Of a stretch of DNA of 64,000 nucleotides, positions 824 to 63,775 are shown one piece after another. Under the pieces are notes generated by a model. That model worked only from the letters and a program-made list of their open reading frames with translations, ran no database searches and was not told the DNA's origin. The stretch's first letter is position 1. Every line of letters begins with the position of its first letter. The stretch is from contig CDROCS010001361.1 of NCBI GenBank assembly GCA_977020255.1, forward strand, positions 186,001 to 250,000, written 5' to 3'. A program made the translations under genes and the position numbers. The stretch is from Obrimoposthia wandeli. Taxonomy: Eukaryota.

Positions 824-1020
824 GCATGCATCTACAACCATTATTCGCCGCGGGGCTTCTAGGTGATAAGGATGTCGAACTGAACCATACAGATGTTGAG
901 ATTGTCCAAGGTAACACTCGGGAAAAAGGACTGGTGTTATCAGCGCTGTGTGGATTGAGCTTCAACAGCAGCATCAGTACATTTTCACCGGGATCCGCAA
1001 CTGCATCATACATTAGCGAG
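824..1020 (+). CDS. Internal exon, N-terminal half of a discoidin-like domain
   Basis: cctcag|GC ATG CAT...AGC GAG|gtaagc; translates (C/G)MHLQPLFAAGLLGDKDVEL...EKGLVLS...SYISE. It starts in phase 1, so an upstream exon is required, and ends in phase 0, matching the next exon. Confidence 0.7.
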
Positions 1021-4000
1021 GTAAGCTTCGAATTACTTTGATCCATACCAACTAGTATGACTATATTTGTTTTCAAAAGTTTGAAAATAATTGAACTATT
1101 ATTTATTGAAATATATTGATTGAGTTTTACTAATTTATTTAACATCAAATTTTCAAATTGGGATTTAGCCGCGATACAGCCTATTTCTTACTAACATTAG
1201 CAATCATTGTAGACTGTTTATCTTCATTTTAAAAGTAATGAACGAAATTTAATTGAATGTAGTATATTGTCATTCTAATGGTACAATAGCATTTTCGATT
1301 TATACTTCGTTATTCGAAAAGATAATTAAGACATATTATTCATTTTCGTCTTTATGATGATTCGCAACATTGCATTGATTTGTTTCTATTGACTATGAAA
1401 TCAGATTTCTGATATAGAAAATCTTATTAATGAAATATTTATATGGATGAAATCAAGACAATTGAAGTTGACTGATAGTAAAACTGAGGCAATATTATCT
1501 GAATCTAAGTGTAATAGAAATCGTATTAAAATAAAAGAAGTTTCGTACTTGTCGGGGAAAATATTATTTATTTAAAAATAAAATAAAGAACAACAGATGC
1601 GTTCTTGATAAAAATATTACATTGAACTGCCAAAGTAATAAGCTGATAAGAACAGTCACACCGAAAAAACCTTACTACTGAGATAACTACAATGATAACG
1701 CAAAAATTGATTTTCAAAATTCTTTACGGTTTAATATTCCAGTATATAAATTAAATCGCTTGCAAACAATTTAAACATAGTCATCAGATTTAGATTCAAA
1801 TTAAAGAAAGTGCTGTTACAAGTAAACATTTAATTAATATCCGTTGGTTTCCCATCAATACCATAATTAGATTCAAGTTCCTTCTTATTATCGAAAATGT
1901 ATTCCTGTGTATCTTAAGAGCATCGGCGATGACTGCAGATTGGTTAAGAAGTTATCAAATAATAAAACAGAGTGCTGGATTATTTGACAATTTATGCTCG
2001 GAATTCTTACAACAATTTACAAATGATTATAGGGAACTGTAACAATGTTGAAAAATTCAAGGAGTAGCTGATGACTTCAGAAAACATTACGAATAATAAT
2101 GGAAAACAGGAAGTGTTTTTCAGTAATAAATCTTATATTAAATATATTATTGCTATCATTATTGTTATAACAAACACTAACATTTCTTTGCCAAACCACA
2201 GGTCAATATATACGGCGATGGTGTGGAGTTTCTGGAAGAATACAGCTTACTGACTGACGACGGTCGAATTCTGAAAAGTAAAGCGGATGTTCAGCAATGT
2301 TCTGGCCGAAAAAGAATTATTGTCGATTCATTTGCATCTCTGATTCATTTGGTCTTTAGAACTTCTGTTTGTACTCATGGTGTCAAGAGAAATACCATAT
2401 TTGTGGAGATCCTGGGATGGTTTACTACCAAAAAAGGCAAGATTTGTTTTCCCTTTTATTTCTTATTGATTTATTTTATGAAAGTGTTCATTTATAGTTT
2501 GTAATACACAACGTTCAAAATGATATATAAATCTAGAAGTAACTAAGATTGTATCGTATTGTTTTTGTTTGTTTAAAGTAATTGCAGCATAAACATTGTT
2601 TACTTAAATATTTGGTTAAATTAAGGAAATTACAAAAATACTCTGTCTGGTGGGTATAGAAAACGAACAGGAAAACAGAAAGAGTTTTCACGAAGAGAGA
2701 AAAGCCTATTTATAATATCAAGATTGAACATTTGAAGGTGAAAGCGAGGAGATTGAAGAAAAACAACTTTCTCTTTATAGTAAGGAACTGTCATAATCTA
2801 TATCTCACATGGCAGCTAAGAGTATTTTCGAAAGTTCGAGTGTTATAGAGTTAGTATAACAGCAGTTGAAAACAGTAGCAGCTGATAGTTATTAAGAAAC
2901 TCGTCTGGAATTTGCAAAATATCCTTTGAAGCCTTTAGCGCTGTGCCGGGAGTGGGACATAAGTTTTTAAAATGTTTTGTAGAGATCATGTTCTCTATGA
3001 CCTTCGCCAACAACATTGTTATTTCACAATTTTCAACCCAAAATAGTAACACACAGTTAAGAGCAGTAAATAATTAAGGGAAATTAATTTTCTACAGAAT
3101 CTAACACTTACTTTTATAATTGATGGTCTTTTAATAATAAATAATCAAACCAAATTTGACATTTTTACACGCTGTTATGATTTTATTTTATGTACTAAAA
3201 TAGAATTTTCAGAATAAGTTTTTGTTCAAATATATATGTTACGGACTGTAAGTACCTAACGCGTTTGATGCTTTTAGTACTTTAAAAATATAGTCGTCTT
3301 TTAAAATAGTTTATTAAAACAAAGTTGGTTCGAAAAGGAAACGCTCCTCTCCCATAATTTTATAACAATATAATCTATATAATCTTTGTATAAAATTTTT
3401 TAAATTTCAGATTGTAACTCTAGAACGGGAACAGTATACCGATTTGAAGAACAGTTGAAAATTGGCAATAACAAAATGTCACTGCAATTAAAAACCGACG
3501 GTGAATATATAAGAAATGTGTATATGATAGCACAAAAAAATTTATTAATTGATCAATTAAGAATTGAATTCATTCCCGCTGAAGATGGAGATCGAAGAAA
3601 ATATAAAATAGAACATTTCAAAATAACCAAGTACAAAATATCTTTCACAAACAAAACGAAACTCCTATGCGTTCCTGTACCTAATATTTCTAAACTACAA
3701 TTAGAAATAGTGACAAAAACAACAGAAAGCGTACAAATAAACATAGAAACAGGTTGCACAAAAGTTGGAAAAACTACAGAAAAATTTCAAACAACAAAAT
3801 CACCAATCAAAAACAAAACTTCAACAACTACAAAAAAGTCGATTTCAACAAAAGAAATAAACGTAAAAACAACCACCAAAAAGTCCAAGATAATTATCAA
3901 AAGCTCAACGAAAAAAAGAATAACCAAAACTATAAAAAGCACAAAGACACCAAAAACATCAACAACAAAAAAGCCAGTTAAGGCCTGCAAACCGAAGAAA

Positions 4001-7000
4001 ATCTTGCAAGACAAGAGACTGACTGACATCAAAGTGACACCAAAGGTAACGAAAGAAGACGAAGATAAATTGAGACCAAATCCCAAAAAACCGAAAGACG
4101 GTTTGGTCTTGACTACAGGAAACAAGAAGATCGTGGTAAGAATCAGTGAGGGCAAGAAGCCGAAGAAGCCAAACAGAATCACGAAAACTGGCCTGAAATT
4201 CCCAGACGAAACTCCAGACAAGAAGGTGGGCGACATCTTTGAGTCAGTAACGGTGACGTTTGTGAAAGAAGTCAAACCGAAGAAGGGCAGCAACGAACCG
4301 AGAAGAGTAAAACAGATTATCACAGTACCGAAAACGAGCACTCTAAAGAAACTGAATAATGTCGTCAGCGACAAAAATACACCACGAAATGTGAAGAAGA
4401 TCATTATTGAGTTGGTGGTGAAGAAGCCAGTAAAGACTACATTGAACGTGAAAGGTTGCGTGAAGAGACGCATTGTGACGACAAGCACAACGAAGAAGAG
4501 CAAACCCGAAACGACAACAACAACAAAGAAGCCGCCCAAGGCCTGCAAACCGAAGAAAATCTTGCAAGACAAGAGACTGACTGATATCAAAGTGACACCA
4601 AAGGTAACGAAAGAAGATGAAGATAAATTGAGACCAAATCCCAAAAAGCCGAAAGACGGTTTGGTTTTGACTACAGGAACCAAGAAGATCGTGGTAAGAA
4701 TCAGTGAGGGCAAGAAACCGACGAAGCCGAACAAAATCACAACAACTGGAGTAAAATTGCCAGAAGAAAATCCAGATAAGAAGGTGAGTGACATATTTGA
4801 ATCAGTAACGGTGACGTTTGTGAAAGAGATTAAGCCAAAGAAGGGCAGCAACGTTCCGAGAAAAGTAAGAGAGACTATTAAAGTTCCGAAGGAGATCACT
4901 GTAGAAGAATTGGAAAATGTTGTCAGTGACAGAAAGAAACCACGAAATGTGAAGAAGATCATTATTGAGTTGGTGGTGAAGAAGCCAGTAAAGACTACAT
5001 TGAACGTGAAAGGTTGCGTGAAGAGACGCATTGTGACGACAAGCACAACGAAAAAGAGCAAACCCGAAACGACAACAACAACAAAGAAGCCGGTCAAGGC
5101 CTGCACAATCAAGAAAATATTGCAAGACAAGAGACTGACTGACATCAAAGTGACACCAAAGGTAACGAAAGAAGACGAAGATAAATTGAGACCAAATCCC
5201 AAAAAACCGAAAGACGGTTTGGTCTTGACTACAGGAAACAAGAAGATCGTGGTAAGAATCAGTGAGGGCAAGAAGCCGAAGAAGCCAAACAGAATCACGA
5301 AAACTGGCCTGAAATTCCCAGACGAAACTCCAGACAAGAAGGTGGGCGACATCTTTGAGTCAGTAACGGTGACGTTTGTGAAAGAAGTCAAACCGAAGAA
5401 GGGCAGCAACGAACCGAGAAGAGTAAAACAGATTATCACAGTACCGAAAACGAGCACTCTAAAGAAACTGAATAATGTCGTCAGCGACAAAAATACACCA
5501 CGAAATGTGAAGAAGATCATTATTGAGTTGGTGGTGAAGAAGCCAGTAAAGACTACATTGAACGTGAAAGGTTGCGTGAAGAGACGCATTGTGACGACAA
5601 GCACAACGAAGAAGAGCAAACCCGAAACGACAACAACAACAAAGAAGCCGGTCAAGGCCTGCACAATCAAGAAAATCTTGCAAGACAAGAGACTGACTGA
5701 CATCAAAGTGACACCAAAGGTAACGAAAGAAGACGAAGATAAATTGAGACCAAATCCCAAAAAGCCGAAAGACGGTTTGGTTTTGACTACAGGAACCAAG
5801 AAGATCGTGGTAAGAATCAGTGAGGGCAAGAAACCGACGAAGCCGAACAAAATCACGAAAACTGGCCTGAAATTCCCAGACGAAACGCCAGACAAGAAGG
5901 TGGGCGACATCTTTGAGTCAGTAACGGTGACGTTTGTGAAAGAAGTCAAACCGAAGAAGGGCAGCAACGAACCGAGAAGAGTAAAACAGATTATCACAGT
6001 ACCGAAAACGAGCACTCTAAAGAAACTGAATAATGTCGTCAGCGACAGAAAGAAACCACGAAATGTGAAGAAGATCATTATTGAGTTGGTGGTGAAGAAG
6101 CCAGTAAAGACTACATTGAACGTGAAAGGTTGCGTGAAGAGACGCATTGTGACGACAAGCACAACGAAGAAGAGCAAACCCGAAACGACAACAACAACAA
6201 AGAAGCCGCCCAAGGCCTGCAAACCGAAGAAAATCTTGCAAGACAAGAGACTGACTGATATCAAAGTGACACCAAAGGTAACGAAAGAAGATGAAGATAA
6301 ATTGAGACCAAATCCCAAAAAGCCGAAAGACGGTTTGGTTTTGACTACAGGAACCAAGAAGATCGTGGTAAGAATCAGTGAGGGCAAGAAACCGACGAAG
6401 CCGAACAAAATCACAACAACTGGAGTAAAATTGCCAGAAGAAAATCCAGATAAGAAGGTGAGTGACATATTTGAATCAGTAACGGTGACGTTTGTGAAAG
6501 AGATTAAGCCAAAGAAGGGCAGCAACGTTCCGAGAAAAGTAAGAGAGACTATTAAAGTTCCGAAGGAGATCACTGTAGAAGAATTGGAAAATGTTGTCAG
6601 TGACAGAAAGAAACCACGAAATGTGAAGAAGATCATTATTGAGTTGGTGGTGAAGAAGCCAGTAAAGACTACATTGAACGTGAAAGGTTGCGTGAAGAGA
6701 CGCATTGTGACGACAAGCACAACGAAGAAGAGCAAACCCGAAACGACAACAACAACAAAGAAGCCGGTCAAGGCCTGCACAATCAAGAAAATCTTGCAAG
6801 ACAAGAGACTGACTGACATCAAAGTGACACCAAAGGTAACGAAAGAAGACGAAGATAAATTGAGACCAAATCCCAAAAAACCGAAAGACGGTTTGGTCTT
6901 GACTACAGGAAACAAGAAGATCGTGGTAAGAATCAGTGAGGGCAAGAAACCGACGAAGCCGAACAAAATCACGAAAACTGGCCTGAAATTCCCAGACGAA

Positions 7001-10000
7001 ACGCCAGACAAGAAGGTGGGCGACATCTTTGAGTCAGTAACGGTGACGTTTGTGAAAGAAGTCAAACCGAAGAAGGGCAGCAACGAACCGAGAAGAGTAA
7101 AACAGATTATCACAGTACCGAAAACGAGCACTCTAAAGAAACTGAATAATGTCGTCAGCGACAAAAATACACCACGAAATGTGAAGAAGATCATTATTGA
7201 GTTGGTGGTGAAGAAGCCAGTAAAGACTACATTGAACGTGAAAGGTTGCGTGAAGAGACGCATTGTGACGACAAGCACAACGAAGAAGAGCAAACCCGAA
7301 ACGACAACAACAACAAAGAAGCCGCCCAAGGCCTGCAAACCGAAGAAAATCTTGCAAGACAAGAGACTGACTGATATCAAAGTGACACCAAAGGTAACGA
7401 AAGAAGATGAAGATAAATTGAGACCAAATCCCAAAAAGCCGAAAGACGGTTTGGTTTTGACTACAGGAACCAAGAAGATCGTGGTAAGAATCAGTGAGGG
7501 CAAGAAACCGACGAAGCCGAACAAAATCACAACAACTGGAGTAAAATTGCCAGAAGAAAATCCAGATAAGAAGGTGAGTGACATATTTGAATCAGTAACG
7601 GTGACGTTTGTGAAAGAGATTAAGCCAAAGAAGGGCAGCAACGTTCCGAGAAAAGTAAGAGAGACTATTAAAGTTCCGAAGGAGATCACTGTAGAAGAAT
7701 TGGAAAATGTTGTCAGTGACAGAAAGAAACCACGAAATGTGAAGAAGATCATTATTGAGTTGGTGGTGAAGAAGCCAGTAAAGACTACATTGAACGTGAA
7801 AGGTTGCGTGAAGAGACGCATTGTGACGACAAGCACAACGAAAAAGAGCAAACCCGAAACGACAACAACAACAAAGAAGCCGGTCAAGGCCTGCACAATC
7901 AAGAAAATATTGCAAGACAAGAGACTGACTGACATCAAAGTGACACCAAAGGTAACGAAAGAAGACGAAGATAAATTGAGACCAAATCCCAAAAAACCGA
8001 AAGACGGTTTGGTCTTGACTACAGGAAACAAGAAGATCGTGGTAAGAATCAGTGAGGGCAAGAAGCCGAAGAAGCCAAACAGAATCACGAAAACTGGCCT
8101 GAAATTCCCAGACGAAACTCCAGACAAGAAGGTGGGCGACATCTTTGAGTCAGTAACGGTGACGTTTGTGAAAGAAGTCAAACCGAAGAAGGGCAGCAAC
8201 GAACCGAGAAGAGTAAAACAGATTATCACAGTACCGAAAACGAGCACTCTAAAGAAACTGAATAATGTCGTCAGCGACAAAAATACACCACGAAATGTGA
8301 AGAAGATCATTATTGAGTTGGTGGTGAAGAAGCCAGTAAAGACTACATTGAACGTGAAAGGTTGCGTGAAGAGACGCATTGTGACGACAAGCACAACGAA
8401 GAAGAGCAAACCCGAAACGACAACAACAACAAAGAAGCCGCCCAAGGCCTGCAAACCGAAGAAAATCTTGCAAGACAAGAGACTGACTGATATCAAAGTG
8501 ACACCAAAGGTAACGAAAGAAGATGAAGATAAATTGAGACCAAATCCCAAAAAGCCGAAAGACGGTTTGGTTTTGACTACAGGAACCAAGAAGATCGTGG
8601 TAAGAATCAGTGAGGGCAAGAAACCGACGAAGCCGAACAAAATCACAACAACTGGAGTAAAATTGCCAGAAGAAAATCCAGATAAGAAGGTGAGTGACAT
8701 ATTTGAATCAGTAACGGTGACGTTTGTGAAAGAGATTAAGCCAAAGAAGGGCAGCAACGTTCCGAGAAAAGTAAGAGAGACTATTAAAGTTCCGAAGGAG
8801 ATCACTGTAGAAGAATTGGAAAATGTTGTCAGTGACAGAAAGAAACCACGAAATGTGAAGAAGATCATTATTGAGTTGGTGGTGAAGAAGCCAGTAAAGA
8901 CTACATTGAACGTGAAAGGTTGCGTGAAGAGACGCATTGTGACGACAAGCACAACGAAAAAGAGCAAACCCGAAACGACAACAACAACAAAGAAGCCGGT
9001 CAAGGCCTGCACAATCAAGAAAATATTGCAAGACAAGAGACTGACTGACATCAAAGTGACACCAAAGGTAACGAAAGAAGACGAAGATAAATTGAGACCA
9101 AATCCCAAAAAACCGAAAGACGGTTTGGTTTTGACTACAGGAAACAAGAAGATCGTGGTAAGAATCAGTGAGGGCAAGAAGCCGAAGAAGCCAAACAGAA
9201 TCACGAAAACTGGCCTGAAATTCCCAGACGAAACGCCAGACAAGAAGGTGGGCGACATCTTTGAGTCAGTAACGGTGACGTTTGTGAAAGAAGTCAAACC
9301 GAAGAAGGGCAGCAACGAACCGAGAAGAGTAAAACAGATTATCACAGTACCGAAAACGAGCACTCTAAAGAAACTGAATAATGTCGTCAGCGACAAAAAT
9401 ACACCACGAAATGTGAAGAAGATCATTATTGAGTTGGTGGTGAAGAAGCCAGTAAAGACTACATTGAACGTGAAAGGTTGCGTGAAGAGACGCATTGTGA
9501 CGACAAGCACAACGAAGAAGAGCAAACCCGAAACGACAACAACAACAAAGAAACCGGTCAAGGCCTGCAAACCGAAGAAAATCTTGCAAGACAAGAGACT
9601 GACTGATATCAAAGTGACACCAAAGGTAACGAAAGAAGATGAAGATAAATTGAGACCAAATCCCAAAAAGCCGAAAGACGGTTTGGTTTTGACTACAGGA
9701 ACCAAGAAGATCGTGGTAAGAATCAGTGAGGGCAAGAAACCGACGAAGCCGAACAGAATCACGAGAACTGGCCTGAAATTCCCAGACGAAACGCCAGACA
9801 AGAAGGTGGGCGACATCTTTGAGTCAGTAACGGTGACGTTTGTGAAAGAAGTCAAACCGAAGAAGGGCAGCAACGAACCGAGAAGAGTAAAACAGATTAT
9901 CACAGTACCGAAAACGAGCACTCTAAAGAAACTGAATAATGTCGTCAGCGACAGCAAGACACCACGAAATGTGAAGAAGATCATTATTGAGTTGGTGGTG

Positions 10001-49000: not shown

Positions 49001-52000
49001 AATCGCTTGAAGTATTCATTGAGCAATCGCCTTGTTGGAGCTGATATAATCCGTGGCCGTCAAGAGATCAACATTACTCTTGGTTTTGGTATTGTTGCCA
49101 CTCTCACAGATGTCGGCCTGATCTTTCCTCGGTTGCCTATCGGTGGGAACTCTTCCACTGTGCTCAGCGATCTGTCTGTCACCATCACTCGCCTGCGTCA
49201 ACGCTACGGCCAGCTACAGCCTAGTTATATCAGACTTACGCCCAGCCTGCCTGTCAGTCTCCAGACTCTCAGAACTCTTCTCATTTCACAGTACACAAGT
49301 GTCAATGAGATCAGCATCTCCTTCATCAATCTGAGATCATCCAATCTCCTTGTCAACATATCTGGTTGCTACTTCAATCAGAAGCTTACAACGACCACTC
49401 AGGCACCAGTAGCATGCGTGCATCTTGGTAAATCGTACCCAACCGGCAAAATATTCCCCAGTTCAGTAGAGTGCATGTACTCGTGAGTTGAATTTACGTT
49501 TTAATTTTTTAACTGTTTACTTTGAATTTACACGTTTTTTAACAATAAAAAATCGAAGAGTAAATTTCGAACAAATGCTATGAAATTGGTTATTTAAATT
49601 AGACTTTAATGTTTGAAAATGCTATGAGTGATCAGAAACATTCTGTTTCTTAAAGAGACTAAAATATTGGAAATATTTAACTAGCTTAATTTCCGATTTC
49701 AAAACTGTATGTTATGTTTAAGACATAGCTTCTTCTCCAAGAAGATTAAATATTTGTTAAGAAACATCAAATCCCGAATTGATTTTAAATCGATTATTTA
49801 TTGAATTGTTACCAATTTATCCACTGTATGGATTTTTAAAATAATATATATATTCTTAAATCTAGATATCGTGTAAAGCCTGAAGTATAAGGCCTGTTTT
49901 TTAAACTGTTTTATTGAAATAGTAAACAGCAAATTGACCAAAATTTAGGCCATGACTTTTAATAAAAGTATAATATTTATGTTAACAATATTTAAATAAA
50001 ATTTTCCTAAAAATTATTAGTATTTGGATTTTATAGCTATAATGTAATTAATATAAATGGACTGCATTTGCTACCTTTGTTTAATGTATCATAATGCAAA
50101 TTTGGTATACGTTTAGAAAAATTAATAAAAACTGAATAAAAATTTTAAATAAAATTTTTGTTTTTGATGTCTTAAAGTATTTTTTAAATGATTTTCATTT
50201 ATAGGAATTTATATTTTTATTCATTATACTTAAGATATTTTAAATTTTTACTATAAAATATTCAAAACATTTTAATATTTTATAATTTTGATTTACCTGA
50301 AGAATTTATATTTGTATTTTTAAATGTTTGCAATATATATTTTAAATGTTTTATTTAAATTTCATCTACATTATTCAGAAATTAGTTTACTTAATATAAT
50401 GTAAATTTTATATATTTTCTTAAATTTTGTTATTTATAGATTTGCCGAATTATTTTTGTTGGACATATTTGTGTTCAGAAAGGTTAATGGAAATTTGTCT
50501 AAACCAACTATTTTATATAATTTAAGGAAATATAATTATATCTTCTGGTGCAAATTCCTTACTACCTACAACTTTTCGCAATATTAGTGTAACTTTATTA
50601 AAAAATTTCTGTTATATATATATTTAAATGTTAGCAATATAAATGTTAAATTTTATTTACATTATTTAGAAATCAGTTTACTTAATATAATGTTTTAATT
50701 TGTATATATTCTTATTTATACATGTGATAATTTTGTTATATTTCATTTTTCTTATCAGAAAAGACAATTGAAATTTGTCCAAATCACCTGTTGTGTAATA
50801 ATTTTGTAAGTCTTTGTACTTTTCATTTCGGTAAATATAATGTCAGTTTTATGTCAGATATTTTTTTCTTACTTACATTAAATTAAATATGAAATATTAT
50901 GGTTATTCAGTTGATTTTATTAAATGAATGCATAGCGACATTTATTTTCTATATATATTAAATTTTTACGACTAATCTCTGATTTTATATATTTTCGAAA
51001 CACTGTTTAACTATTGAAAACATTAAGAGTGTCAGAAAGGATAGTTTAAATCACAGTGGTTTATGGTGTTATAACATTTCGAATAGAAAATGTCAACTGT
51101 AACACAAAATAAATATTTAAGACATTTTGGATTTATTCAGATTAAAGAAATATATAAATTATTTTCAAAAAAATATTGTATTTATAAATGAGTCTGATAT
51201 TCAATAGTTCTATGGTAATGTCTAATCGAAATGTGAAATATTGACATAGCAATTAAGTAAGTGACCTGGTGCAGATAGTTTTAGTCTTTTCTGCTGTGCA
51301 GAGTGTGCACAAATGGCCGTATCGTACCCATTGTGAAGTGCCGGGAAACGTGGTCGGCATGGTCGGATTGCTCGAAGCCTTGTGGGGCCGGAAGAAGCAG
51401 TCGGCGCAAGATATGCGTACTCAATCCGGTAATAAAGTCCATCAAAGCGAGTGTGCTGCTAAAGAGCATCAAAGAGTCCTGCATGTACCGTATCGAGTCG
51501 CAACCATGCTTCAAGAAACCGTGTCTAGGTAATGTGGTCTTTTGGTTGACGGTTTTGAGGAACTTTGGGAAAAGCCATTTTTATTGAGGATTTGTAAAAT
51601 TTTAACTGTTTATAAATGTCATATACGACTTGTTTCCTTGCGAGCATGTCCCTTTGCTGGAGCCATATCATGTGTAATTGGGCCTGTGCTTTTGCAGAGG
51701 CATGCAAAATGAGCCAGTGGTCTTCGTGGAGCGAATGCAGAAATCAGACGTGCCGCAGCGAATACCAAACACGGTACCGAGTGGTCGTCAGCACAAACAA
51801 GAAGGTGCAGTGCCAAGAACCTCTCGTACAATCGAAGAGATGTGTCAAACCTAAATGTAAGTTAATAAGTGATCTTGCTGATTTTTCTTTTTGTAAAAGA
51901 AACTTATTGAAAACTGAACGTTTTTTTTAAGGTAGGGATTTAAATAACTAAAGGGACTATGAAGATTTTTTTGATCCCAGAAGTGCAGTGATCGATATTT

Positions 52001-55000
52001 CTATTATCGCACTAAGAGCGAAGTTATCGAAGACATTATTAGATACTAATGAAATAACGTCACGACCTTTTTTTTTTGGACTTCCCTCCACTTTGTCATA
52101 AATTTAGAGAACCCCTCAAAATGACGTTACATTTAACTACTCATAATTGAAAAAAGATTTTAAAATCAAAATACTCCACAATATTGTCTAAAGTAGAAGC
52201 GTATATACGGTTTTCATCAGAGCACCTTTAACATTGAGGATAGAAATAGGGTTGACATCAGAACTTAGACTTTCTCCGATCACGAGTATTTCATGAAGTC
52301 TCGAGGTCGACAAAGTGTTCTTTGACCGTTGCAGTATTTGTGTTTGGATTGCCACACATATTATACCTTTTTTTCAGCACAAACAATTCGTAGACAGCAA
52401 AAAAATTTGGAAATTATTTATTAAATGATCAAAATTCATATGAATATCGTCGCACGAGTTTCTTTCATAAGCTTTGATTGTATTTATTTATCTATTAACG
52501 GCTGTCCAAGCAGTGTCATAACGTCACATAGCTTTTGCTGTTCCGTGGTGCAACGTAAAACGTTTTTGACCCATTTAGGAGCGCAAAAAAAAATGCTCAA
52601 ATCCGATAAAAACAAACAACTATTTCGGTGAAATTTAATTCTAAACTTATTTGGCCAGTTTGTCCAAAGAAAATTATTGTCATAACTTTTAAAACTTTGT
52701 TTTACAACATGCGATATTAAAAGATGGAAAGCGGGAAAGATCCTATTATTTTCTAGGGTGAATTCGAAATTATCTTAACATTGGAAAAGGAGCATTGCTG
52801 CAAATGGGGACTCGAAATATATATATATATATATATTGTTTTAATCATTATTTGGCACATATGGATTACAATATGAGATATACTACGTTTCTACGATCAT
52901 GTAATATTTCATCACAAAATACGTGCTTATCGCTGTTTTTATTGCTGATTTACGTTTCGCCTTATCTTTGCTCAACAAATAAACATTATGAATTATTTTA
53001 AGTCTATTAGTAACTGAGGGAGAATAAAGAAGAAATTTTAGTAGAGCCCAACAGTTTTTCTGCGCCAGAAACGAAATCTTTTAGCTAGACTGGACAATGA
53101 TTAAATGCATAATCGGACAATAATTGAGACTCAATTTATGTTTTAGCAATATAAGGAAACATTTCAATAATCTCAGACTCGACCATGCCTCAGTATACAT
53201 TCTGGTTACATAATCGTCTGGTATAGGTCCGTGTGAGGAGAACGCGGTGATGGACAGCTGCGCCAACAAGATCTGTCCCAGCAGTTGCGATCACATGAAC
53301 CCTCGAGTCAAGTGCGAGCCGGCTGACACAAGCAAGTGTATCCGTGCCTGCGTATGCAAGACTGGTTACCTCTACCGGGGTCATAAGTGCGTTCCTCGGC
53401 GCAACTGCGACTGCATCAAACCCGTCTTCCGGGGCTGGTTCCAGACTACAACTTCTTCTTCGCTTTCCGGAGGGCTATCCACCAAGGTTAGTGGCGACAC
53501 GACCTTCTGAAGGACCTTCATAACATATACAGTATAATCCCCTTATAAGGAACCACCAAGGGCTCATTTAAAGGGTTCATGAAAATTTATTTCTGTATCA
53601 AATTGCATTAGTAACATTAAATTTAAATGTCAATTGATGAATGTGATCCTTATTGTTTCGTTTTACTATATCAATTTTATCTATAAGATATGGCGCCAGA
53701 AACAAAACGTGCCCAAATTGTTGCATTAAAAAATGCTGGAATTTCTAACAGTGATATAGTAAAGCAGCTGGGTGTGTGTCGCAAAACCGTTTTCAACGTC
53801 TGGAAACGACATAATGAGGAGGCTACAACATTTGAGAAACCTAATCTAGGACGAAAAAGGTCAATCCGTACAAAACGAGTTGCTGAAGCTGTGATGAAAC
53901 GAATCAAGAGGGATCCCCATAGGAGCATGAGAAAAACTGCAAAAGCTATGAATCTCAAAATCCTCAATGCATAGGATATTTAAAAAGGATTTACTGATGA
54001 CTGCATACAAAAAGCAATCTAGGCAGTTAATTTCAGGTGCTTCCAAGAAGAAACGGCTCAACAGGGGCAGAATTATGTTAGCAAAAATGAAGCGCGCCGG
54101 CGAAAAAAAATTGATCTGGTCTGATGAGAAGATATTTACCGTGGAGGCAGTTGCTAATAAGCAAAATGATAGAATTTACGCACGTCATTCTACAGATCTT
54201 CCCGAAGGTAGCAGAACACATTTCAAGCGACAGAAACCAGCTGGAGTCATGGTGTGGGCTGCAGTTGCTTCTGATGGGTCTAAGTCCCTCTGATATTCGT
54301 CGATGAAGGTGTTAAGGTGAACACTAATGTATACATCAAAATTTTGGATGAAAACGTGTTACCCTGGATCACTAGCACATTTGGAGAGAATTATGTATTT
54401 ACTCAAGATGGTGCACCGGCTCACACTCTAATTTGACTCAAAAATGGTGTAAAGATCATTTTTCTGAATTCTGGGACAAGAACGTATGGCCTCCCTCAAG
54501 TCCAGACATTAACCCAATGGACTTTTCTATTTTGTCTATCTTAGAGAGCAATGTTTCCTCTAAATCATACTCAAATGTAGCTGCTCTAAAAGAAGCTCTT
54601 CTTAACACATGGTCCAAGTTTGATGAGGAGGTGGTGCGGCGATCTTGTCAATCAGTGACCACTCTTTTACAGGCTATGGTGAAAGCAAAAGGCGGCCATT
54701 TTGAGATTTGACTATTTTAATATATTAGCAAAATATATGTAAACGTATGGTCCGAGTTTTATTATTCTATCTTAAGTTAACATTGAATAATTTAAAAAAA
54801 AAACATGGGTAAGTCATTATGGGACACCCTGTAGATTACATCTTTGAATTTCTGTTGAAAATTTCCCTTGTCAGGCGACCGGCACTGGGAAATCGGGAGC
54901 TCCGGGTACCAATAGCCAGATGTCATCGTCAACTCTTACGCCCACCACAACACAGTATGTGAGCACTGCCAAGCCAATTGTGGACTTTCCGCAGCTTAAC

Positions 55001-58000
55001 ATCGACCGGTTCAAAGAACTATTCAAACAAAAATCTCAGGGAACGCCACCATGGCTACCTGGACAAACGCCACAAATTAAGTATATGTAAGTTTCTTCAG
55101 AATATTCCTACACAAATGTCATTTTCCAATCTCTGGTGCATATATGGCATAAATATCTATCTATTTCTGTCTGATTTCTACTTAATTATTAACAGATATC
55201 ATTTAATATAGCTACGTGATATCGAAATTTAAAGGTTCATAACTTTTTTTAAACTAAGCAGTTCGTCATAAAACTGAATTCATCAAAATGTTTCAAAGTG
55301 CCTTTGTTGGTCTATAATATTGTAATTTCAGATAAAAATAAGAACCGACTATGTAATATCACTTTAAATATTTCAAATAAGCCATATTCTGATATTTTTG
55401 TAGATTATTTGTCTTCATTCCTTAAGAGATTAATATGCTTATAATGAGTTTCCAACAAAGTCGCCTGCCTTTTTGTCAAAATTTATAGAAAATAAAATTA
55501 CAAGCTCAATTTTTTTGAGAAGAAAGGACGAAAATAGAAAGCTGACCATTCAAAGATCTTAATCGAAGAAATAAGACTATGAAGCCTTAACAATAGTTTG
55601 CCATCAGCAATGAGAAAGTGTAAAAATATTGAAGAATGCAGAAAAAACAAATATTATATTCTTTCGATTAAAAAAGAATATGTTTTTTCAATTCAAAAAA
55701 AACTTTTTTTTTCTTTCGTTTTTTATCACTACAATAAATACTATGTTTTAAATCGCGGTTAGTAATATTTTGGAACGGGATATCTTGTGGTTATAATTAG
55801 AGAATGGTTTATACTATATACCTTTCATTCGATGTTTATTAAACTACAAAAGTGTTGATATTTTTATATGGAAAATCCATCTATTGTTGTCACCGGAATT
55901 GGGGAGTTGTCAGCTCGCATATGGGGTGAGTTCATATAGACCAATTTTTGAGAGTGCCTTTATCATGAAGGGCCACGGAACCATTCTATCCGGGCACGAC
56001 GCCGGCAGGAGCGACCATCAAACCACCAGTAGAGACAACCCGTGTCATCACTATCGCGCCACCACCAAAGGGCCTTACTGCCTCTCCACCAGACCCTAAC
56101 AAGAAGCATACTCCTGCCCCACTCGGCTTCATTGTCACAGCAAGGGCCGGACAGCCACCGCCTGCTGTCACAGGAGCTCCAGTATCGCCATCGCCGCCAC
56201 CACCGTCCGGAGGCAACAACAATCAGCCGGGAGCAGCCTCCAAGGGACCATCCGGAGGAAGTGAGACTCCTTATGTGGTGCTCAAGAGAGAATCCCTGTA
56301 TAAGTCTTAGGCCAAAGGTTGAAGGAAATATGTCCATTATCTACTTTCATCATGAATTACTATCCACTTGTGGTATCCCATCAGCTCCAACAATATCCAT
56401 CTGAAAATAATAAAACACATTTCGACTAGTTGTTTCCACTCCTCTCTCAAACTTCCTGTAATTATCCTAATTTTGTTGCGTCCGATAATCCTATTACTCT
56501 GAATGCATCTGATTCTTACTATTTCAACATTGTTTTCCCCTTGGGCCAGAGCTGCATAAATGTTCATCCACTCGTTTCCAATGACTTCACAGTGGCTGCG
56601 GATCGAAGTAAACACGCTTGCTATCCATATTATTTCCAACTCTGCCAGTCAACCTATCTATCTCTATGTCATCTCTATCACAGTTTCTTTTGAGATATCC
56701 AGAAAACCACTGAACTGAATATTGTAAACCATGTTAATTTATCAACTCCACATAAAGAGCAAACAGTTTGTTGCCTCAGTCTCCCAGCTACAGGTTTGGA
56801 GTCGTGTCTCGTATTGTATACTAGAATCCACCTTACTCGCGCAGATGCCGCTTCGCCGACTCCCAATCCTGGGGTCAGTCCGAATTCCGGCAAGCCAAAG
56901 GGTAGCGGCCAACCAGGCTCCTCTGGCAGAACATCCAGTCCACTACCGGGTAGTGCCTCCACCACGGACGTCTCTATCTTCGACAAGGACCGAGTCACCG
57001 CTAATTCTACACTGCTTGTCAACTGCCAAGTATGGTACGTCCACAAGCACTCGTGTCACCACACATCACTCGGTTGCATCATGGGGACTACGAAAAATAT
57101 TCACAAAAATTAACTTTTATTTTAAAATATCATACCCCAAGTTCTTAATAAACCGTATATCAAAAATTATACAAAATTTCTGCAACAGAAAAAGTTTAGA
57201 TATTTTTGAGTGATAAAAGTATTACTTGAAAATTGATTTTGTCGTTAATCTGAGTATAATTTAACATTTTTCATGTCTTTTCCTTTCAGCGTCTGTACTA
57301 ATGGATTACTGAAGTGCTCCGGTCCTCCTTGTAAATGTGAGTGCACTTTGAACAATTTTATATTTACACTGCGTAAAAATAACAACTGTTATCATTTCCC
57401 TTTAATTAAATATCATATTTGTAATCTAAATGTTTTATTACAAAAGTCAACTTAAAAATTCCATCTCATTCGGATTTTGAGATATCGACATGGTCAAATA
57501 ACACCTTAACATTGATATATATATAGAGTGATATCAATTCGTTATCAGGTACTATCTGCTATGAAAACACAAAGTGCTTCTATTAGTTTCTGATAGATTC
57601 TGTTGTTGCAAACGTTAGCCAAGTATTTCAGTTTGTTATTTCGAAAGATTCAAACTTCTTACTGATATTTAACTGACCATGATTTAATAATAAAGGTTCT
57701 CTAGACATCGAAATTTCGTAATATTTATTCCTTTTATCATTTTCCATAATAATCTCTTCATCTATCTACATCGAATAAAGAAAATTTGAAAGTTACAACG
57801 ATAATTTTATGAATTATAACAAATTTTTAAAAATAACTAAACATTGAGACTGTAAACAGAGAAGCCTTAAATGGATACGTTGCCTTAATGCTTTCAATAT
57901 TTATAGTAATTTTCATCATAATCAAAGCGTTCAAATTCGGATACTTGTCTAGACTCATTGTGTTAGAGAAAGGCAGTGATTACTGTGGTGGGGGTATACA

Positions 58001-59635
58001 GCTTCAGAGACCGGATGGAGCGAGTGGAGCGGCTGGTCTCCCTGCAGTGCTGTCTGTCACCGCGGCATCAAGCGTCGATTCCGCCGTTGTCAGTCCGGCC
58101 TCAACTGCGCATCTGCCAAGGACAAAACGGTGCTCCCTACCGGGATCCGGCGAGTCGACCTTGGTAGTGGGGTCCAGGCCGAAGAGAGCCATTGCGATGT
58201 TCCGCGTTGCTCATGCGTCTTCTCTCGAGACGTTTTCAAGGTCGGTGAAACATTCGCGTGTAAAATTTATATAGCCCTACATGACAGTTCAGGATTTTTG
58301 TACATTTCCTTTTTTCGATATGGCCACCTTATCATGCAGACTTAAATCCCGTTGAAAATATTTGGGGTTTACTCAAAAGAAGCATTTGAAAGGAATCCCA
58401 TTAAAAACAAAAGAACAGCTTAAATCAAGAAATCACCTGGTGCTGATGAATTCCTGTGAAAACACTCAAAAACAAATTCCTAAAGTACATGGAATTTCGT
58501 TAACCTCGAGTAATCTTGTATAATGGTCGATGTACAAAGTATAAACAATATATATATATTAACACAATACAGCGATTCGTAGATTGGAACTTTTTTGGTG
58601 TTTTATAGTAAAGTATTTTTAGTTTTTCAGGTAAATTAAGAATATAATTCAACATAAAATTTCGCAGCTATTTTATAACATTTCATTTATGTTAGGTTTC
58701 TTATTTCAATCTGAAAATGTCGAGGTCAAGACTTCTAGGAGGCTTTAAAATAAGCATTTGTCCCGTTAAGCATATTTAGCCTAAATAAAAGGTAGTTACT
58801 AATTTTTTTTCTCTCATATTGTGTGACTGATTTGATATTATCCATAATATATTGAAATTTAAACTTACATTTTATTACTTATAAATAAATGTAGTAATTT
58901 ATGTATTGTTTAAAATTAATTACTGGATAAATTTGTCAGTTTGCTAGATTATCCTGATAAATATCACGCCCACAAATGCGTAGATCTATCTTGGAGAAGA
59001 GGACGTACGCAAGTACAAGATGGACCTCAATATCGTCTGGGTAGAGAAGGACGGCAAGAAGGGTCTCACCCACGCCAGTGAACAACTGCGCCCGGGAGAC
59101 ATTGTTCCTAGTGAAGAGACGGCCTTGATAAACTGCGGACACTGGTGAGACTTACTTTTTCTGGCTCTTCATGCTAAGTAGATAATAAATTATATCATTT
59201 TAAATAATGGTGTTTATTTATAATTTATCAATGCTGATACAGACTTGATAATGCTGAAGAATGGATACAAGGAACCCATTATAGAGAAACAACTACATTC
59301 CGTTATATATGAGTTCTAGTGAAATCCTTCATATTATTTGTATGATCGTCCCATATTCCATTGGATTTCGACAGTTCAAAATAACTGTAAACAAAGTGTG
59401 GCCACAAATAGGGCTTGTTTCACAATTATTTAAAGTATGTAATATGATTTCTAACACACCTTCTGCTAGTTCCGTACGTATTTTAAATAAACAAAGTAAA
59501 TTGTTATGAAATTAATTAGATGGCTTTCTTTTTTAAGTCAATTTTTGAGTAACACTATAATTCTAAATTAATTTACCTTTTTATTTCAGCAAATGCAACA
59601 ACGGAAGATTTGAGTGTCAGCGTGACTGCAAATAA
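824..59635 (+). CDS. Giant multi-exon gene: secreted Lys/Thr-rich repetitive protein with discoidin-like repeats and C-terminal TSP1/TIL/VWC modules (flatworm adhesive protein ap2-like); 5' end outside window
   Basis: Exons 824-1020, 2202-2436, 3411-49482, 51302-51528, 51698-51856, 53227-53486, 54875-55086, 55971-56260, 56845-57034, 57290-57336, 58002-58240, 58984-59144, 59590-59635. All 12 junctions have AG acceptors, GT (one GC) donors and matching phases (0,1,2,1,1,0,2,1,2,1,0,2). The joined frame ends ...KCNNGRFECQRDCK*. Nominal coding length in the window is about 48.3 kb (about 16,100 codons). Confidence 0.85.
1160..1900 (+). mobile_element. Decayed L2/CR1-clade LINE reverse transcriptase remnant in intron
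   Basis: Broken but ordered motifs: DLAA.DT (about 1162), YTSLFEKIIKTYYSF/RLYDDSQ (YADD region, about 1300-1370), IENLINEIFIWMKSRQLKLTDSKTEAIL (about 1415-1497), NRLQTI (about 1755), HLINIRWFPINTIIRFKFLLI (about 1827-1890; L2-type LHWLP..RI.FK motif). Confidence 0.6.
2202..2436 (+). CDS. Internal exon, C-terminal half of a discoidin-like domain
   Basis: Branch-point-like CTAAC at about 2177, ccacag| acceptor; translates VNIYGDGVEFLEEYSLL...FASLIHLVFRTSVCTHGVKRNTIFVEILGWFTTKK. It ends AAG|gcaaga in phase 1. Confidence 0.75.
2437..3410 (+). other. Non-canonical GC-AG intron
   Basis: Donor AAG|GCAAGA and acceptor tttcag|AT. G+AT=Asp joins the exon in frame to the 3455 ORF frame (D-C-N-S-R-T-G-T-V-Y-R-F-E-E-Q-L-K-I-G). 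Confidence 0.65.
3411..49482 (+). CDS. Giant ~46-kb coding exon (repeat core), broken in this sequence by about 16-18 small indels
   Basis: Continuous protein-repeat coding with no intron-like insert. Consecutive ORF-track ORFs (2980, 564, 937, 3507, 1019 ... 1026 aa) continue the same repeats in shifted frames. It ends TAC TC|gtgagt in phase 2. Confidence 0.8.
3986..28532 (+). repeat. Coding tandem array A: 44 x 558 bp (186 aa), with alpha and beta variants
   Basis: Period of 558 bp, also visible in the spacing of the minus-strand shadow ORFs. Unit: CKPKKILQDKRLTDIKV...VKTTLNVKGC plus linker VKRRIVTTSTTKKSKPETTTTTKKPVKA. 13 units are beta type (KEITVEELEN). Confidence 0.95.
28533..29543 (+). 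repeat. Two single-copy divergent (relic) units between arrays A and B
   Basis: Same skeleton (KLRPNP..PKDGL ... SLNIKGC / LLYIKRC) but strongly diverged and AT-rich; each carries an additional NCT motif. Confidence 0.85.
29544..48862 (+). repeat. Coding tandem array B: 19 x ~1020 bp (340 aa) heterodimer B1+B2
   Basis: B1 is CTGKKIIEDKKLTTIK...VKVTLNVKGC and B2 is CKKPVALIQKKKMV...VAVKFSGC, joined by short Thr-rich linkers. I counted 19 B1 starts from 29544 to about 47890. Confidence 0.95.
48863..49482 (+). CDS. Unique Lys-poor terminal repeat unit plus start of a VWC-like module
   Basis: CNLPTSLFDS...LLVNISGC, then a TTTTQAP linker, then CVHLGKSYPTGKIFPSSVECMYS, which continues in the next exon as VCTNGRIVPIVKC. 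Confidence 0.75.
51302..51528 (+). CDS. Exon: end of VWC-like module and TSP1 domain
   Basis: gtgcag|A GTG TGC...CTA G|gtaatg; WSAWSDCSKPCGAGRSSRRKIC...QPCFKKPC (WSxWxxCSxxCGxG..R motif). Confidence 0.9.
51698..51856 (+). CDS. Exon: spondin-type TSP1 domain
   Basis: ttgcag|AG GCA TGC...AAA T|gtaagt; CKMSQWSSWSECRNQTCRSEYQTRYRVV...CQEPLVQSKRC. Confidence 0.9.
53227..53486 (+). CDS. Exon: TIL (trypsin-inhibitor-like cysteine-rich) domain
   Basis: gtatag|GT CCG...ACC AAG|gttagt; CEENAVMDSCANKICPSSC...CEPADTSKCIRACVCKTGYLYRGHKCVPRRNC (10-Cys TIL pattern). Confidence 0.9.
53690..54831 (+). mobile_element. Defective Tc1/mariner-superfamily transposon, maT (DD37D) type, intronic
   Basis: HTH N-terminus MAPETKRAQIVAL..., WSDEKIF, TQDGAPAH, WPPSSPDINPMDF. 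There are 37 residues between the last two Asp after restoring one lost base, and three frameshifts (about 53955, 54288, 54428). The right TIR ...CATGGGTAAGTCATTATGGGACACCCTG is followed by TA (54832-54833). Confidence 0.9.
54875..55086 (+). CDS. Exon: Ser/Thr/Gly/Pro-rich linker
   Basis: ttgtcag|GCG ACC...TAT AT|gtaagt; ATGTGKSGAPGTNSQMSSSTLTPTTTQY...PPWLPGQTPQIKY. The phases fit both neighbours. Confidence 0.8.
55440..55660 (+). mobile_element. Possible decayed 3' end of an L2/CR1-type LINE ORF2
   Basis: Fragments NEFPTKSPAFLS and NSLPSAMRKCKNIEECRK resemble the C-terminal WNSLP..IR motif. They are short and degenerate. Confidence 0.3.
55971..56260 (+). CDS. Exon: Pro/Thr/Gly-rich low-complexity region
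   Basis: atgaag|G GCC ACG...GGA A|gtgaga; ATEPFYPGTTPAGATIKPPVETT...VSPSPPPPSGGNNNQPGAASKGPSGG. It is a GC-rich island in AT-rich intron. Confidence 0.8.
56845..57034 (+). CDS. Exon: Gly/Ser/Pro-rich linker and start of VWC-like Cys cluster
   Basis: cgcgcag|AT GCC...GTA TG|gtacgt; AASPTPNPGVSPNSGKPKGSG...DRVTANSTLLVNCQV(C). Confidence 0.8.
57290..57336 (+). CDS. Small exon completing a VWC-like module
   Basis: ctttcag|C GTC TGT...AAA T|gtgagt; gives NCQVCVCTNGLLKCSGPPCK. Confidence 0.85.
58002..58240 (+). CDS. Exon: TSP1 domain
   Basis: atacag|CT TCA GAG...TTC AAG|gtcggt; GWSEWSGWSPCSAVCHRGIKRRFRRC...EESHCDVPRCSC. Confidence 0.85.
58984..59144 (+). CDS. Penultimate exon
   Basis: gcgtag|ATC TAT...CAC TG|gtgaga; IYLGEEDVRKYKMDLNIVWVEKDGKKGLTHASEQLRPGDIVPSEETALINCGH(C). 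Confidence 0.8.
59590..59635 (+). CDS. Terminal coding exon
   Basis: tttcag|C AAA TGC AAC AAC GGA AGA TTT GAG TGT CAG CGT GAC TGC AAA TAA; completes NCGHCKCNNGRFEC. Confidence 0.85.
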
Positions 59636-61015: not shown

Positions 61016-61215
61016 TGTAGATAATAACCAATGAGAGTTAAATGGTGTGTTTATAGAACATTATTAATTATTAATTATTTAAAACAAATTATCTATAGAA
61101 TATTCTAGTTAAATATTTATATTATATTTGTTTTATCGCATCAATGAATTAATTATTAAAAAAAAAGTGTTTGATTAATCGATTTTATCAGTAAATCATA
61201 AATTAAAATTACATC

Positions 61216-61407
61216 ATGGAAGAGGAAAAAATGGAGATGATCCGCAAAAGAATTCTGGATCTTGAAGAAATATCCTTTAAAGAGAAAGTACAGAAGCTTC
61301 AACCGTTTATGATCAGAGAAGCTTTGGAGGTAGAGGAGATACCTGGGTTTGTGAGATTTAACCCAGGGCATGTCCCTACATTTATTCATGCTCCTCAGTG
61401 GACTTGA
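61216..61407 (+). CDS. Orphan 63-aa ORF, divergent from the previous ORF
   Basis: MEEEKMEMIRKRILDLEEISFKEKVQKLQPF...; it is a purine-rich coding-like island followed by a stem-loop and AATAAA. Confidence 0.45.
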   Translation: MEEEKMEMIRKRILDLEEISFKEKVQKLQPFMIREALEVEEIPGFVRFNPGHVPTFIHAPQWT

Positions 61408-61797: not shown

Positions 61798-62280
61798 AAC
61801 ATAAATTATAAGGAAAGGTTTTAAGCTCAATCAAGGATATACCTTTTCGCAAATCGAAACCTCAACAATATCGTCCCAAGTGTCTAGATTATACTATAAT
61901 ACTCTTTAAATCTGGTAAATTATTTTATTATAAAATATTAATATTTTTAAGGCTCCTGCCGAGTAATGGGGTGTAAAAAGGTGTTAGATGAAAGAAATTT
62001 ACCATTTTATATATAAATCGAAAGAATTCAATCGATTACTGTTAGTGTTGACTTGGAACATTGAACAAATCTTAACAAGATGAGTGAAAATATGGGAATT
62101 GATGCTGTTTATGAACCCGAAATATTTCCCGGACTTCGTTGTATTAAGTATAATCCACTTTGTGTAAACATTTTTGCAAGTGGGAAAGTTATGATTTTAG
62201 GTTTAAAGACTTTAGATTATGTATTTCTAGTTGAAATTATTTTGTATAATATATCTCTGTTCACTTGTGTTTTTTTTTGA
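61798..62280 (+). pseudogene. Highly divergent TBP-like (TATA-binding protein fold) pseudogene with an apparent 37-nt intron
   Basis: Reconstruction: NINYK/GKVLSSIKDIPF...YTIILFKSG|intron 61915-61951 gt..ag|SCRVMGCKK...*IERIQSITVSVDLEH*TNLNKMSE...AVYEPEIFPGLRCIKYNPLCVNIFASGKVMILG. Both TBP repeat signatures (LFxSG..xxG and YEPExFPGL...IFxSGKxxIxG) are present, with two stops and one frameshift. Confidence 0.75.
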
Positions 62281-62919: not shown

Positions 62920-63091
62920 TTGCAGCTCAATCTCACAAGTTTGCCTCGCTGCTCCGTTCAAGTTGCAGCTCAATCTCACAAGTTTGCCTCGCTGCTCCGT
63001 TCAAGTTGCAGCTCAATCTCACAAGTTTGCCCCGCTGCTCCGTTCAAGTTGCAGCTCAATCTCACAAGTTTGCCCCACTGCTCAGTTCTAA
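62920..63091 (+). repeat. Minisatellite, 4 x 43 bp
   Basis: Unit TTGCAGCTCAATCTCACAAGTTTGCCTCGCTGCTCCGTTCAAG, degrading towards the 3' end. Confidence 0.9.
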
Positions 63092-63244
63092 GTTGCAGTG
63101 CTCAGTACCACAGGCAATTCCACTGCTCAGTCACAGCTTGCCGTCCAGCAGTTTCTCATCTCACCCATTTCCGTGTCGAGAGAACTATACCAGGAGACGA
63201 GGACTTATTGATAACAGGAGTAACTAAAGGTATAAATACCCGCA

Positions 63245-63775
63245 GAATTGGTAACATTTGATAACGAATATTTGAATCATAAATTAGAAATTGAATTGGT
63301 AACATTTGATAACGAATATTTGAATCATAAATTAGAAATTGAATTGGTAACATTTTGATAACGAATATTTGAATCATAAATTAGAAATTGAATTGGTAAC
63401 ATTTGATAACGAATATTTGAATCATAAATTAGAAATTGAATTGGTAACATTTTGATAACGAATATTTGAATCATAAATTAAAAATTGAATTGGTAACATT
63501 TGATAACGAATATTTGAATCATAAATTAGAAATTGAATTGGTAACATTTTGATAACGAATATTTGAATCATAAATTAGAAATTGAATTGGTAACATTTGA
63601 TAACGAATATTTGAATCATAAATTAGAAATTGAATTGGTAACATTTGATAACGAATATTTGAATCATAAATTAGAAATTGAATTGGTAACATTTTGATAA
63701 CATATATTTTTGAATCGTAAATTAGAAATTGAATTGGTAACATTTTGATAACATATATTTTGAAATCGTAAATTT
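63245..63775 (+). repeat. Minisatellite, 11 x 48/49 bp
   Basis: Unit GAATTGGTAACATTT(T)GATAACGAATATTTGAATCATAAATTAGAAATT; periods 48,48,49,48,49,48,49,48,48,51; the last two copies are diverged. Confidence 0.95.

Follow-up and report, generated by a model that had tools for sequence, protein, structure and literature searches.

What kind of protein is encoded by the very long coding tract on the plus strand of the window studied here, that is, the whole 64,000-nucleotide (nt) stretch from contig CDROCS010001361.1 (positions 186,001 to 250,000) of the Obrimoposthia wandeli assembly GCA_977020255.1? An earlier note on this DNA proposed a giant secreted adhesive resembling the flatworm glue protein ap2. 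We conclude, with a probability of about 0.68, that the locus represents the 3′ 48 kb of coding sequence of a flatworm-type ap2 gene, a new member of the ap2 family. This agrees with the earlier proposal, which is supported by the architecture of the gene and, modestly, by the similarity of its repeats to those of a proseriate ap2. All coordinates below are those of the window.

The gene model was rebuilt as 13 exons starting at 824, with 48,197 nt of coding sequence (~16,060 codons), canonical GT-AG introns and consistent phases, just as the earlier note had drawn it (13 phase-consistent exons, about 48 kb). The phases agree only when 17 frameshifting indels of the core are read through. The earlier note had not noticed that in the assembled sequence the core does not form a single open reading frame, the frame switching at these 17 small indels. 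From ~3.4 to 49.5 kb, the plus strand forms one long coding tract with a strong purine and A skew and a GC content of 42-45%; the GC content of the flanks and non-coding parts is 26-31%. Repeat periods were derived from k-mer spacing and motif anchors, and every unit was aligned to the consensus of its own array. The core is composed as follows.

3411..49482, plus strand: giant core exon of 46,072 nt (acceptor tttcag at 3410, donor GTGAGT at 49483; from the frame map and repeat anchors)
3413..3757, plus strand: N, a diverged domain copy of 115 amino acids (aa), Cys...Gly-Cys (domain alignment)
3758-3988, plus strand: 77-aa linker after the N copy, Lys 30%, Thr 27% (composition)
3968..28532, plus strand: array A, 44 units of 558 bp, i.e., 186 aa made of a 158-aa domain and the 28-aa linker VKRRIVTTSTTKKSKPETTTTTKKPVKA (repeat anchors)
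28533..29492, plus strand: T1 and T2, unique transitional domains between the arrays, 59% and 38% identical to A1
29493..48862, plus strand: array B, ~19 units of 1020 bp, i.e., 340 aa comprising the diverged domains B2 and B1 and, for each of them, a Thr-rich linker (repeat anchors)
48410-48862, plus strand: C1, the last B1 copy, slightly diverged (domain alignment)
48920..49369, plus strand: C2, the last domain copy, highly divergent and, with 1.3% Lys and 15% Ser, not rich in Lys (alignment and composition)

The two distinct, near-perfect repeat arrays seen by the earlier note were thus found again, on the plus strand, with periods of 558 bp (44 units) and 1020 bp (~19 units). Altogether the core exon holds ~86 domains joined by Thr/Lys-rich linkers. 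Each domain comprises ~150-158 aa, with a Cys at its start and Gly-Cys at its end, and is followed by a linker of 20-30 aa such as that of array A; runs of Thr are present in every linker. Within array A, subtypes A1 and A2 partly alternate and are ~9% apart (~50 nt), and 12 near-identical copies lie at 21182-27876. The units of array B show 0-8 mismatches to their consensus, mostly 0-5. In an alignment of eight diverged copies, the Cys at either end and one Gly are invariant. The ratio of non-synonymous to synonymous substitution rates (dN/dS) is 0.37 for A1 versus A2 and 0.29 for A1 versus T1, with a range of 0.29-0.40 among the diverged copies, so that the differences are mostly synonymous. 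The 14,853 in-frame residues of the core contain 22.0% Lys, 12.7% Thr and 13.0% Val and almost no Trp, His or Tyr, which gives a net charge of ~+2,360 and an isoelectric point of 10.3; the protein is indeed polycationic, as had been proposed. On the minus strand, mirror open reading frames (ORFs) of up to 3,514 aa occur at 3787-48553, periodic with the arrays. They seem to be by-products of the codon composition of the repeats, and the hidden Markov model (HMM) of the repeat domain found no match there; we did not retain them as genes.

Downstream of the core, ten small exons with GT-AG introns follow in phase up to the stop codon TAA (59633-59635).

51302..51528, plus strand: second half of Cys module 1 (VCTNGRIVPIVKC), then TSP1 no. 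1 (Pfam TSP_1/TSP1_spondin, splice sites, phase)
51698..51856, plus strand: TSP1 no. 2 (Pfam TSP_1, 32.2 bits, above cut-off; splice sites, phase)
53227..53486, plus strand: TIL and the start of a Ser/Thr-rich stretch (Pfam TIL, 1.5e-9, 38.3 bits; splice sites, phase)
54875..54954, plus strand: small Ser/Thr-rich exon (an alternative donor at 55086 is likewise in phase)
55971..56260, plus strand: Pro/Thr/Gly/Ala-rich low-complexity exon (splice sites, phase, composition)
56794..57034, plus strand: low-complexity exon ending with the first half of Cys module 2 (...LLVNCQV; splice sites, phase)
57290..57336, plus strand: micro-exon that completes Cys module 2 (C-VCTNGLLKCSGPPCK; strong acceptor and donor)
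58002..58240, plus strand: TSP1 no. 3, after which Cys module 3 begins (Pfam TSP_1 above cut-off at 26.3 bits; splice sites, phase)
58984..59144, plus strand: middle of Cys module 3 (...ALINCGH; splice sites, phase; no Pfam family)
59590..59635, plus strand: last coding exon (C-KCNNGRFECQRDCK, then the stop TAA; splice sites, phase)

All 12 splice junctions of the model and the terminal stop are intact. The resulting 620-aa tail reads, in order, Cys module, TSP1, TSP1, TIL, a 145-aa Ser/Thr/Pro/Gly/Ala-rich stretch with further low complexity, Cys module, TSP1, Cys module. Pfam scans of the window placed three TSP1 domains (51285-51584, 51616-51927, 57980-58342) and one TIL domain (53214-53507), and found none of VWD, C8, LDLa, EMI or CTCK; no hydrophobic stretch of the tail resembles a membrane span. 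The three Cys modules share the pattern ...C-x2-C/S-x-C-x-N-G-x3-C: CxxCxCxNGxxxC is present in modules 2 and 3, and in module 1 a Ser takes the place of the middle Cys. Every module is split by a phase-2 intron within this middle Cys/Ser codon, and the conserved intron position supports the exon model. Of the Cys-rich C-terminus outlined by the earlier note, the three TSP1 domains, the TIL domain, the low complexity and the lack of a membrane span were confirmed, while its VWC-like modules were not: the spliced Cys modules 1 and 3 fell in no Pfam family, VWC (PF00093) included, and we dropped this assignment in favour of a resemblance at the motif level.

Upstream of the core, two exons were assigned tentatively.

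824..1020, plus strand: tentative upstream exon (acceptor AG at 822-823, donor GTAAGC; open frame, splice sites, phase)
2202..2379, plus strand: tentative upstream exon ending in ...IHLVFRTSVC (open frame, splice sites, phase)

Since the exon at 824..1020 opens at an acceptor, it is not the first exon and the gene extends further upstream. The end of the exon at 2202..2379 resembles that of a domain, and its leftover base completes the first codon of the core exon. Neither exon gave a match to Pfam or to the repeat-domain HMM. An extra diverged domain spread over the two exons looked plausible by eye and was set aside, as the domain HMM did not support it.

To which proteins is such a gene related? 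In the proseriate Minona ileanae, Mile-ap2 (Mile-ap2a and Mile-ap2b; GenBank MK854811, MK854812) bears a Thr-rich repeat in at least 12 copies within an exon of at least 15 kb (PMC6745481). It has three TSP1 domains and one TIL domain and was detected in adhesive footprints by mass spectrometry (PMC6745481). The present gene resembles it in having a long Thr-rich repeat in one giant exon (46 kb here) and the same three TSP1 and one TIL; it differs in the number of resolved repeats (~12 there, ~86 domains in two arrays here) and in having a short loop where the Mile repeat contains an intradomain Thr/Ser-rich insertion. The first ~400 nt of the Mile-ap2a transcript are printed in the supplement of that paper (PMC6745481), which brings ~130 residues within reach; 79 of these were translated by hand and compared with our domains. 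BLASTP of the fragment against the A1 domain gave an E value of 7e-4, with DKLRPN---DKDGLTLPNG aligned to DKLRPNPKKPKDGLVLTTG, and hhalign against the eight-copy alignment gave 7.5e-4 at equivalent domain positions. The Smith-Waterman alignment is collinear over ~70 residues, from DKLRPN..KDGL.L..G to ESVTV..VK. The shuffle z scores were 4.8 for A1, 5.1 for A2 and 6.9 for T2, and none of 500 shuffles reached the real score. Given this modest match at the right place together with the shared architecture, we take the A-type repeat to be homologous to the proseriate ap2 repeat.

The other two described ap2 proteins were compared by their published descriptions. Tmed-ap2 of the polyclad Theama mediterranea (ON323670) is 7,228 aa long, with arrays of 8 × 330 aa and 12 × 230 aa, 22.5% Lys, ~11% of residues predicted as O-glycosylation sites, a known signal peptide and a C-terminus with three TSP1 and one TIL, and RNA interference (RNAi) against it produces non-adhesive animals (PMC9229212). 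The two arrays, the Lys content (22.0% here) and the three TSP1 and one TIL are all shared with the present protein, which is more than twice as long (>16,000 aa) and differs in the size and order of the units (186 and then 340 aa). Mlig-ap2 of Macrostomum lignano has 14,794 aa with repeats of 21 × 255 aa and 25 × 221 aa, N-terminal VWD/C8/TIL/LDLa and C-terminal TIL/TSP1 domains with two TIL bracketing the TSP1 domains; it is the glycosylated, surface-contacting component of the glue, and RNAi again yields non-adhesive animals (PMC6410801). According to the authors, there is no sequence conservation between its repeats and those of Minona. The extreme Lys/Arg regions of Macrostomum belong to ap1, not to ap2. 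The present protein is similar to Mlig-ap2 in size, in the two-array core and in the C-terminal TSP1 and TIL, but has one TIL instead of the bracketing two. The description of Mlig-ap2 given in the earlier note was accurate as to the ~15,000 aa, the two-motif core and the TSP1/TIL domains, and inaccurate as to VWC, the flanks being VWD/C8/TIL/LDLa. Taken together, the present locus combines two successive arrays of long repeats (44 × 186 aa, then ~19 × 340 aa), Thr-rich repeats with about 22% Lys, three TSP1 and one TIL by Pfam (in the order TSP1-TSP1-TIL-...-TSP1) and a modest resemblance in sequence to one known ap2. SCO-spondin, hemocytin and gel-forming mucins are likewise very large secreted proteins with TSP1, TIL, Cys-rich modules and Ser/Thr-rich stretches; the window differs from them in lacking VWD, C8, LDLa, EMI and CTCK, and the bulk of the present protein is a beta-sandwich repeat of no known family, which those proteins lack.

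This repeat is predicted with confidence to fold as a galactose-binding-domain-like beta-sandwich of the discoidin/F5_F8_type_C/CBM32 class. AlphaFold2 run on the eight-copy alignment gave a confident all-beta single domain (mean predicted local distance difference test, pLDDT, 86; predicted template modelling score, pTM, 0.82), i.e., a beta-sandwich jelly-roll within the ~130-160 aa typical of the class. Comparison with the ESM Atlas structures gave template modelling scores of 0.59-0.65 to F5_F8_type_C and carbohydrate-binding clusters, with DOC, SUN and IFT25 folds scoring equally well. Discoidin domains tie their ends together with a terminal Cys pair, and the first and last residues of the present domain are invariant Cys in eight of eight diverged copies. 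In a two-domain model, two separate beads were connected by a disordered linker (pLDDT <50, pTM 0.46), which makes the "beads on a string" of the earlier note a fair description of the predicted structure. At the sequence level, the domain matches no discoidin, F5-F8 type C or CBM32 family, and its surface is extremely Lys-rich. Pfam scans of the repeat units returned neither PF00754 nor a related family at E values up to 1; matches to UPF0147 and DUF3592, which are unrelated families, were discarded as sub-threshold or repeat-inflated noise. When the last 1,031 aa of the core served as the query of a word-indexed search for homologues, nothing was found, and a feature search of the ESM Atlas, with a best score of 0.56 to ubiquitin-like and bacterial clusters, was not considered meaningful. 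The suggestion that the repeat core is undescribed holds insofar as it has no Pfam family or database homologue, and has to be corrected insofar as it resembles the repeat of Mile-ap2a. No published structure prediction for ap2 repeats was found in the searchable literature, and a discoidin-like fold, as predicted here for repeats of the ap2 type, appears to be undescribed so far.

Is the gene intact? The stop-to-stop map of the core shows 14 long open stretches with overlapping ends, hopping among the three frames. Relative to the repeat consensus, there are 17 frameshifting indels of 1-2 nt (15 deletions and two insertions) and two in-frame deletions of 3 nt.

12305..46396, plus strand: span of the 17 frameshifting indels, -1 unless marked
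12305 (+1), 14022 (-2), 14257, 17003, 27518, 27539, 30591, 30658, 30855, plus strand: frameshift sites
32081, 33910, 36700, 40356, 43944 (-2), 45876, 46217, 46396 (+1), plus strand: frameshift sites, continued
30693, 33748, plus strand: in-frame 3-nt deletions

The frame switches were also considered as short introns and this was rejected, since each of them shifts an otherwise exact repeat period by 1-2 nt. Many of the indels lie in A-runs, and some occur at the same repeat position in distant units. Not a single substitution-type stop was found in the consensus frame of 61 units (~44 kb), where about one-fifth of the codons are AAA or AAG, each one step from a stop. In the unique flank, a deep and accurate sequencing run (X1) agrees with the assembly exactly, and the low-depth runs X3 and X4 carry many 1-nt deletions; this pattern suggests short-read polishing that fails inside near-identical repeats. 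The authors of the Theama draft genome met the same frameshift problem in their own adhesive genes. A pile-up at 48900-53650 likewise shows a deep exact run and deletion-noisy, low-depth runs from one sample, suggesting a hybrid assembly of long and short reads.

In view of the absence of substitution stops, the deletion bias and the A-runs, unpolished assembly error is the likeliest source of the frameshifts, and we hold with good confidence that they are leftover long-read consensus errors in near-identical repeats rather than real lesions. Alternatively, the locus might be a young pseudogene, with real frameshifts of which some were spread among the units by unequal crossing-over. The same A deletion does recur in non-adjacent units (30591, 36700, 45876), and each of the units at 29997 and 33050 has a 3-nt deletion paired with a G deletion; such recurrence could reflect the copying of a mutated unit. 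The G deletion lies outside a pure homopolymer. We nevertheless consider this improbable, as ~44 kb of AAA/AAG-rich codons contain no nonsense substitution, the proportion of 14 indels to 31 substitutions in array B is far from natural mutation spectra, and the strong deletion bias is like that of the noisy runs of the same sample; moreover, dN/dS is well under 1, and the splice junctions and the stop have been preserved. A dN/dS of 0.29-0.40 together with the lack of substitution stops indicates that the gene is or was functional. As assembled, it would be labelled in annotation as broken or cut into ~14 pieces, and other near-identical repeats of this genome may hold similar unpolished frameshifts.

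Even an intact relative of ap2 might serve another purpose than surface attachment, for instance, as a secreted scaffold of gliding mucus, of cocoon or stalk cement, or of the extracellular matrix. The Thr-rich linkers and the Ser/Thr/Pro stretch are mucin-like, TSP1 and TIL are common in many matrix proteins, and adhesive proteins of flatworms have been proposed to have evolved from mucus proteins (PMC6745481); Theama also leaves a slime positive for peanut agglutinin (PNA), and the sequencing runs holding the locus are all genomic. We regard a non-adhesive scaffold as rather unlikely, given that the combination of two giant arrays, 22% Lys, three TSP1 with one TIL and similarity to Mile-ap2a is specific for ap2 and not for the described mucus proteins, and that the VWD, C8 and CTCK modules of gel-forming mucins are absent from the window by Pfam. 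Far less probable still is a convergent look-alike from a non-flatworm animal (e.g., a rotifer or a chaetognath) outside the ap2 lineage. Repeated origins of giant Thr/Lys-rich repeat proteins that contain TSP1 and TIL are conceivable, and one structural neighbour in the AlphaFold DB bears the name "CTCK domain-containing protein", its origin being unknown; convergence would hardly account, however, for the collinear match with the Mile-ap2a repeat at an equivalent place in the domain, or for a C-terminal domain count identical to that of two flatworm ap2 proteins (Mile-ap2 and Tmed-ap2).

Several points weigh against the assignment to ap2 and a working glue gene. The window does not reach the 5′ end of the gene, where the signal peptide and possible VWD/LDLa domains would be encoded. 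The model has no transcript support: the four public runs covering the locus are all genomic and from a single sample, their coverage is continuous across the introns with no spliced joints, and no RNA-Seq run is listed among the runs holding the locus. The similarity to Mile-ap2a is modest (E ~1e-3 over 19-36 residues, the 70-residue collinearity being backed by shuffles alone), and in the shuffle test it was absent for the B1, C2 and N copies. A profile of the eight diverged copies found no match among 1.84 billion representative proteins, a library in which the inclusion of known ap2 proteins was not established. The frameshifts, if real, would mean a dead gene. Finally, a discoidin-like fold, here a predicted one, does not by itself show sugar binding.

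If the gene encodes an ap2, how might the protein work? The ap2 proteins of other flatworms are glycosylated and form the component of the temporary glue that binds the surface, and by analogy we infer an adhesive role for the present protein. Adhesive gland cells would secrete it as a flexible chain of Lys-coated beads, very long and O-glycosylated. With a net charge of ~+2,360, its many cationic beads could bind negatively charged natural surfaces multivalently, and the Thr-rich linkers and the Ser/Thr/Pro stretch would carry mucin-type glycans. As in the published flatworm models, the TSP1/TIL/Cys tail may couple the chain to cohesive partner proteins or cross-link it. A bolder and quite tentative idea, which we think possible if doubtful, is that a domain of lectin type (CBM32/discoidin-like) is hidden in the ap2 repeat, and that the glue works as a self-complementary chain. 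In that case, ~86 Lys-coated, sugar-binding beads would alternate with linkers bearing mucin-type O-glycans, each molecule could attach to anionic or glycan-coated surfaces and also to glycans on the molecules next to it, and competing sugars or polyanions could reverse the resulting multivalent network. The echinoderm adhesives Sfp1, Sfp10/11 and Nectin contain discoidin or F5-F8 type C-like (FA58C) domains, and the lectin idea, if true, would tie the flatworm glue mechanistically to these FA58C-containing adhesives.

The surroundings of the gene contain a few other features. Within the intron after the TIL exon, and outside the gene product, there is a transposon remnant.

53687..54708, plus strand: decayed Tc1/mariner-like transposase remnant (HTH_23, HTH_29, HTH_Tnp_IS630), its frame broken over three frames

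No terminal inverted repeats of this remnant were found. Directly downstream of the ap2-like gene, a short ORF at 62065-62277 (plus strand), together with 61207-61404, matches Pfam TBP with an E value of 1.5e-7 (profile positions 18-68 of 85) and, judging by this match, looks like a truncated TBP-like gene or pseudogene. The 3′ flank further contains two tandem arrays, one of 43 bp × 4.1 at 62920-63098 (97% matches) and one of 48 bp × 10.9 at 63245-63774 (95%). An Rfam search of the 64-kb window gave no match.

Among reversible biological glues, that of flatworms is one of the best understood, and ap2 is the part of it that binds the surface. The giant repeats of ap2 have rarely been assembled, the repeat units having had no structural or family assignment before. 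The locus described here is an unusually complete ap2 locus, with ~86 domains arranged in two arrays within a 46-kb exon and with a TSP1/TIL tail whose ten exons are intact. The host lineage is probably planarian-like; the AT-rich non-coding DNA and the ~900 Mb of contigs in the deepest run would fit a triclad-like flatworm, and no ap2 has been described in planarians in the searched literature. The repeats of two distant flatworms are now linked by sequence, and the prediction of discoidin/CBM32-like beads strung on mucin-like linkers bears on biomimetic reversible adhesives.

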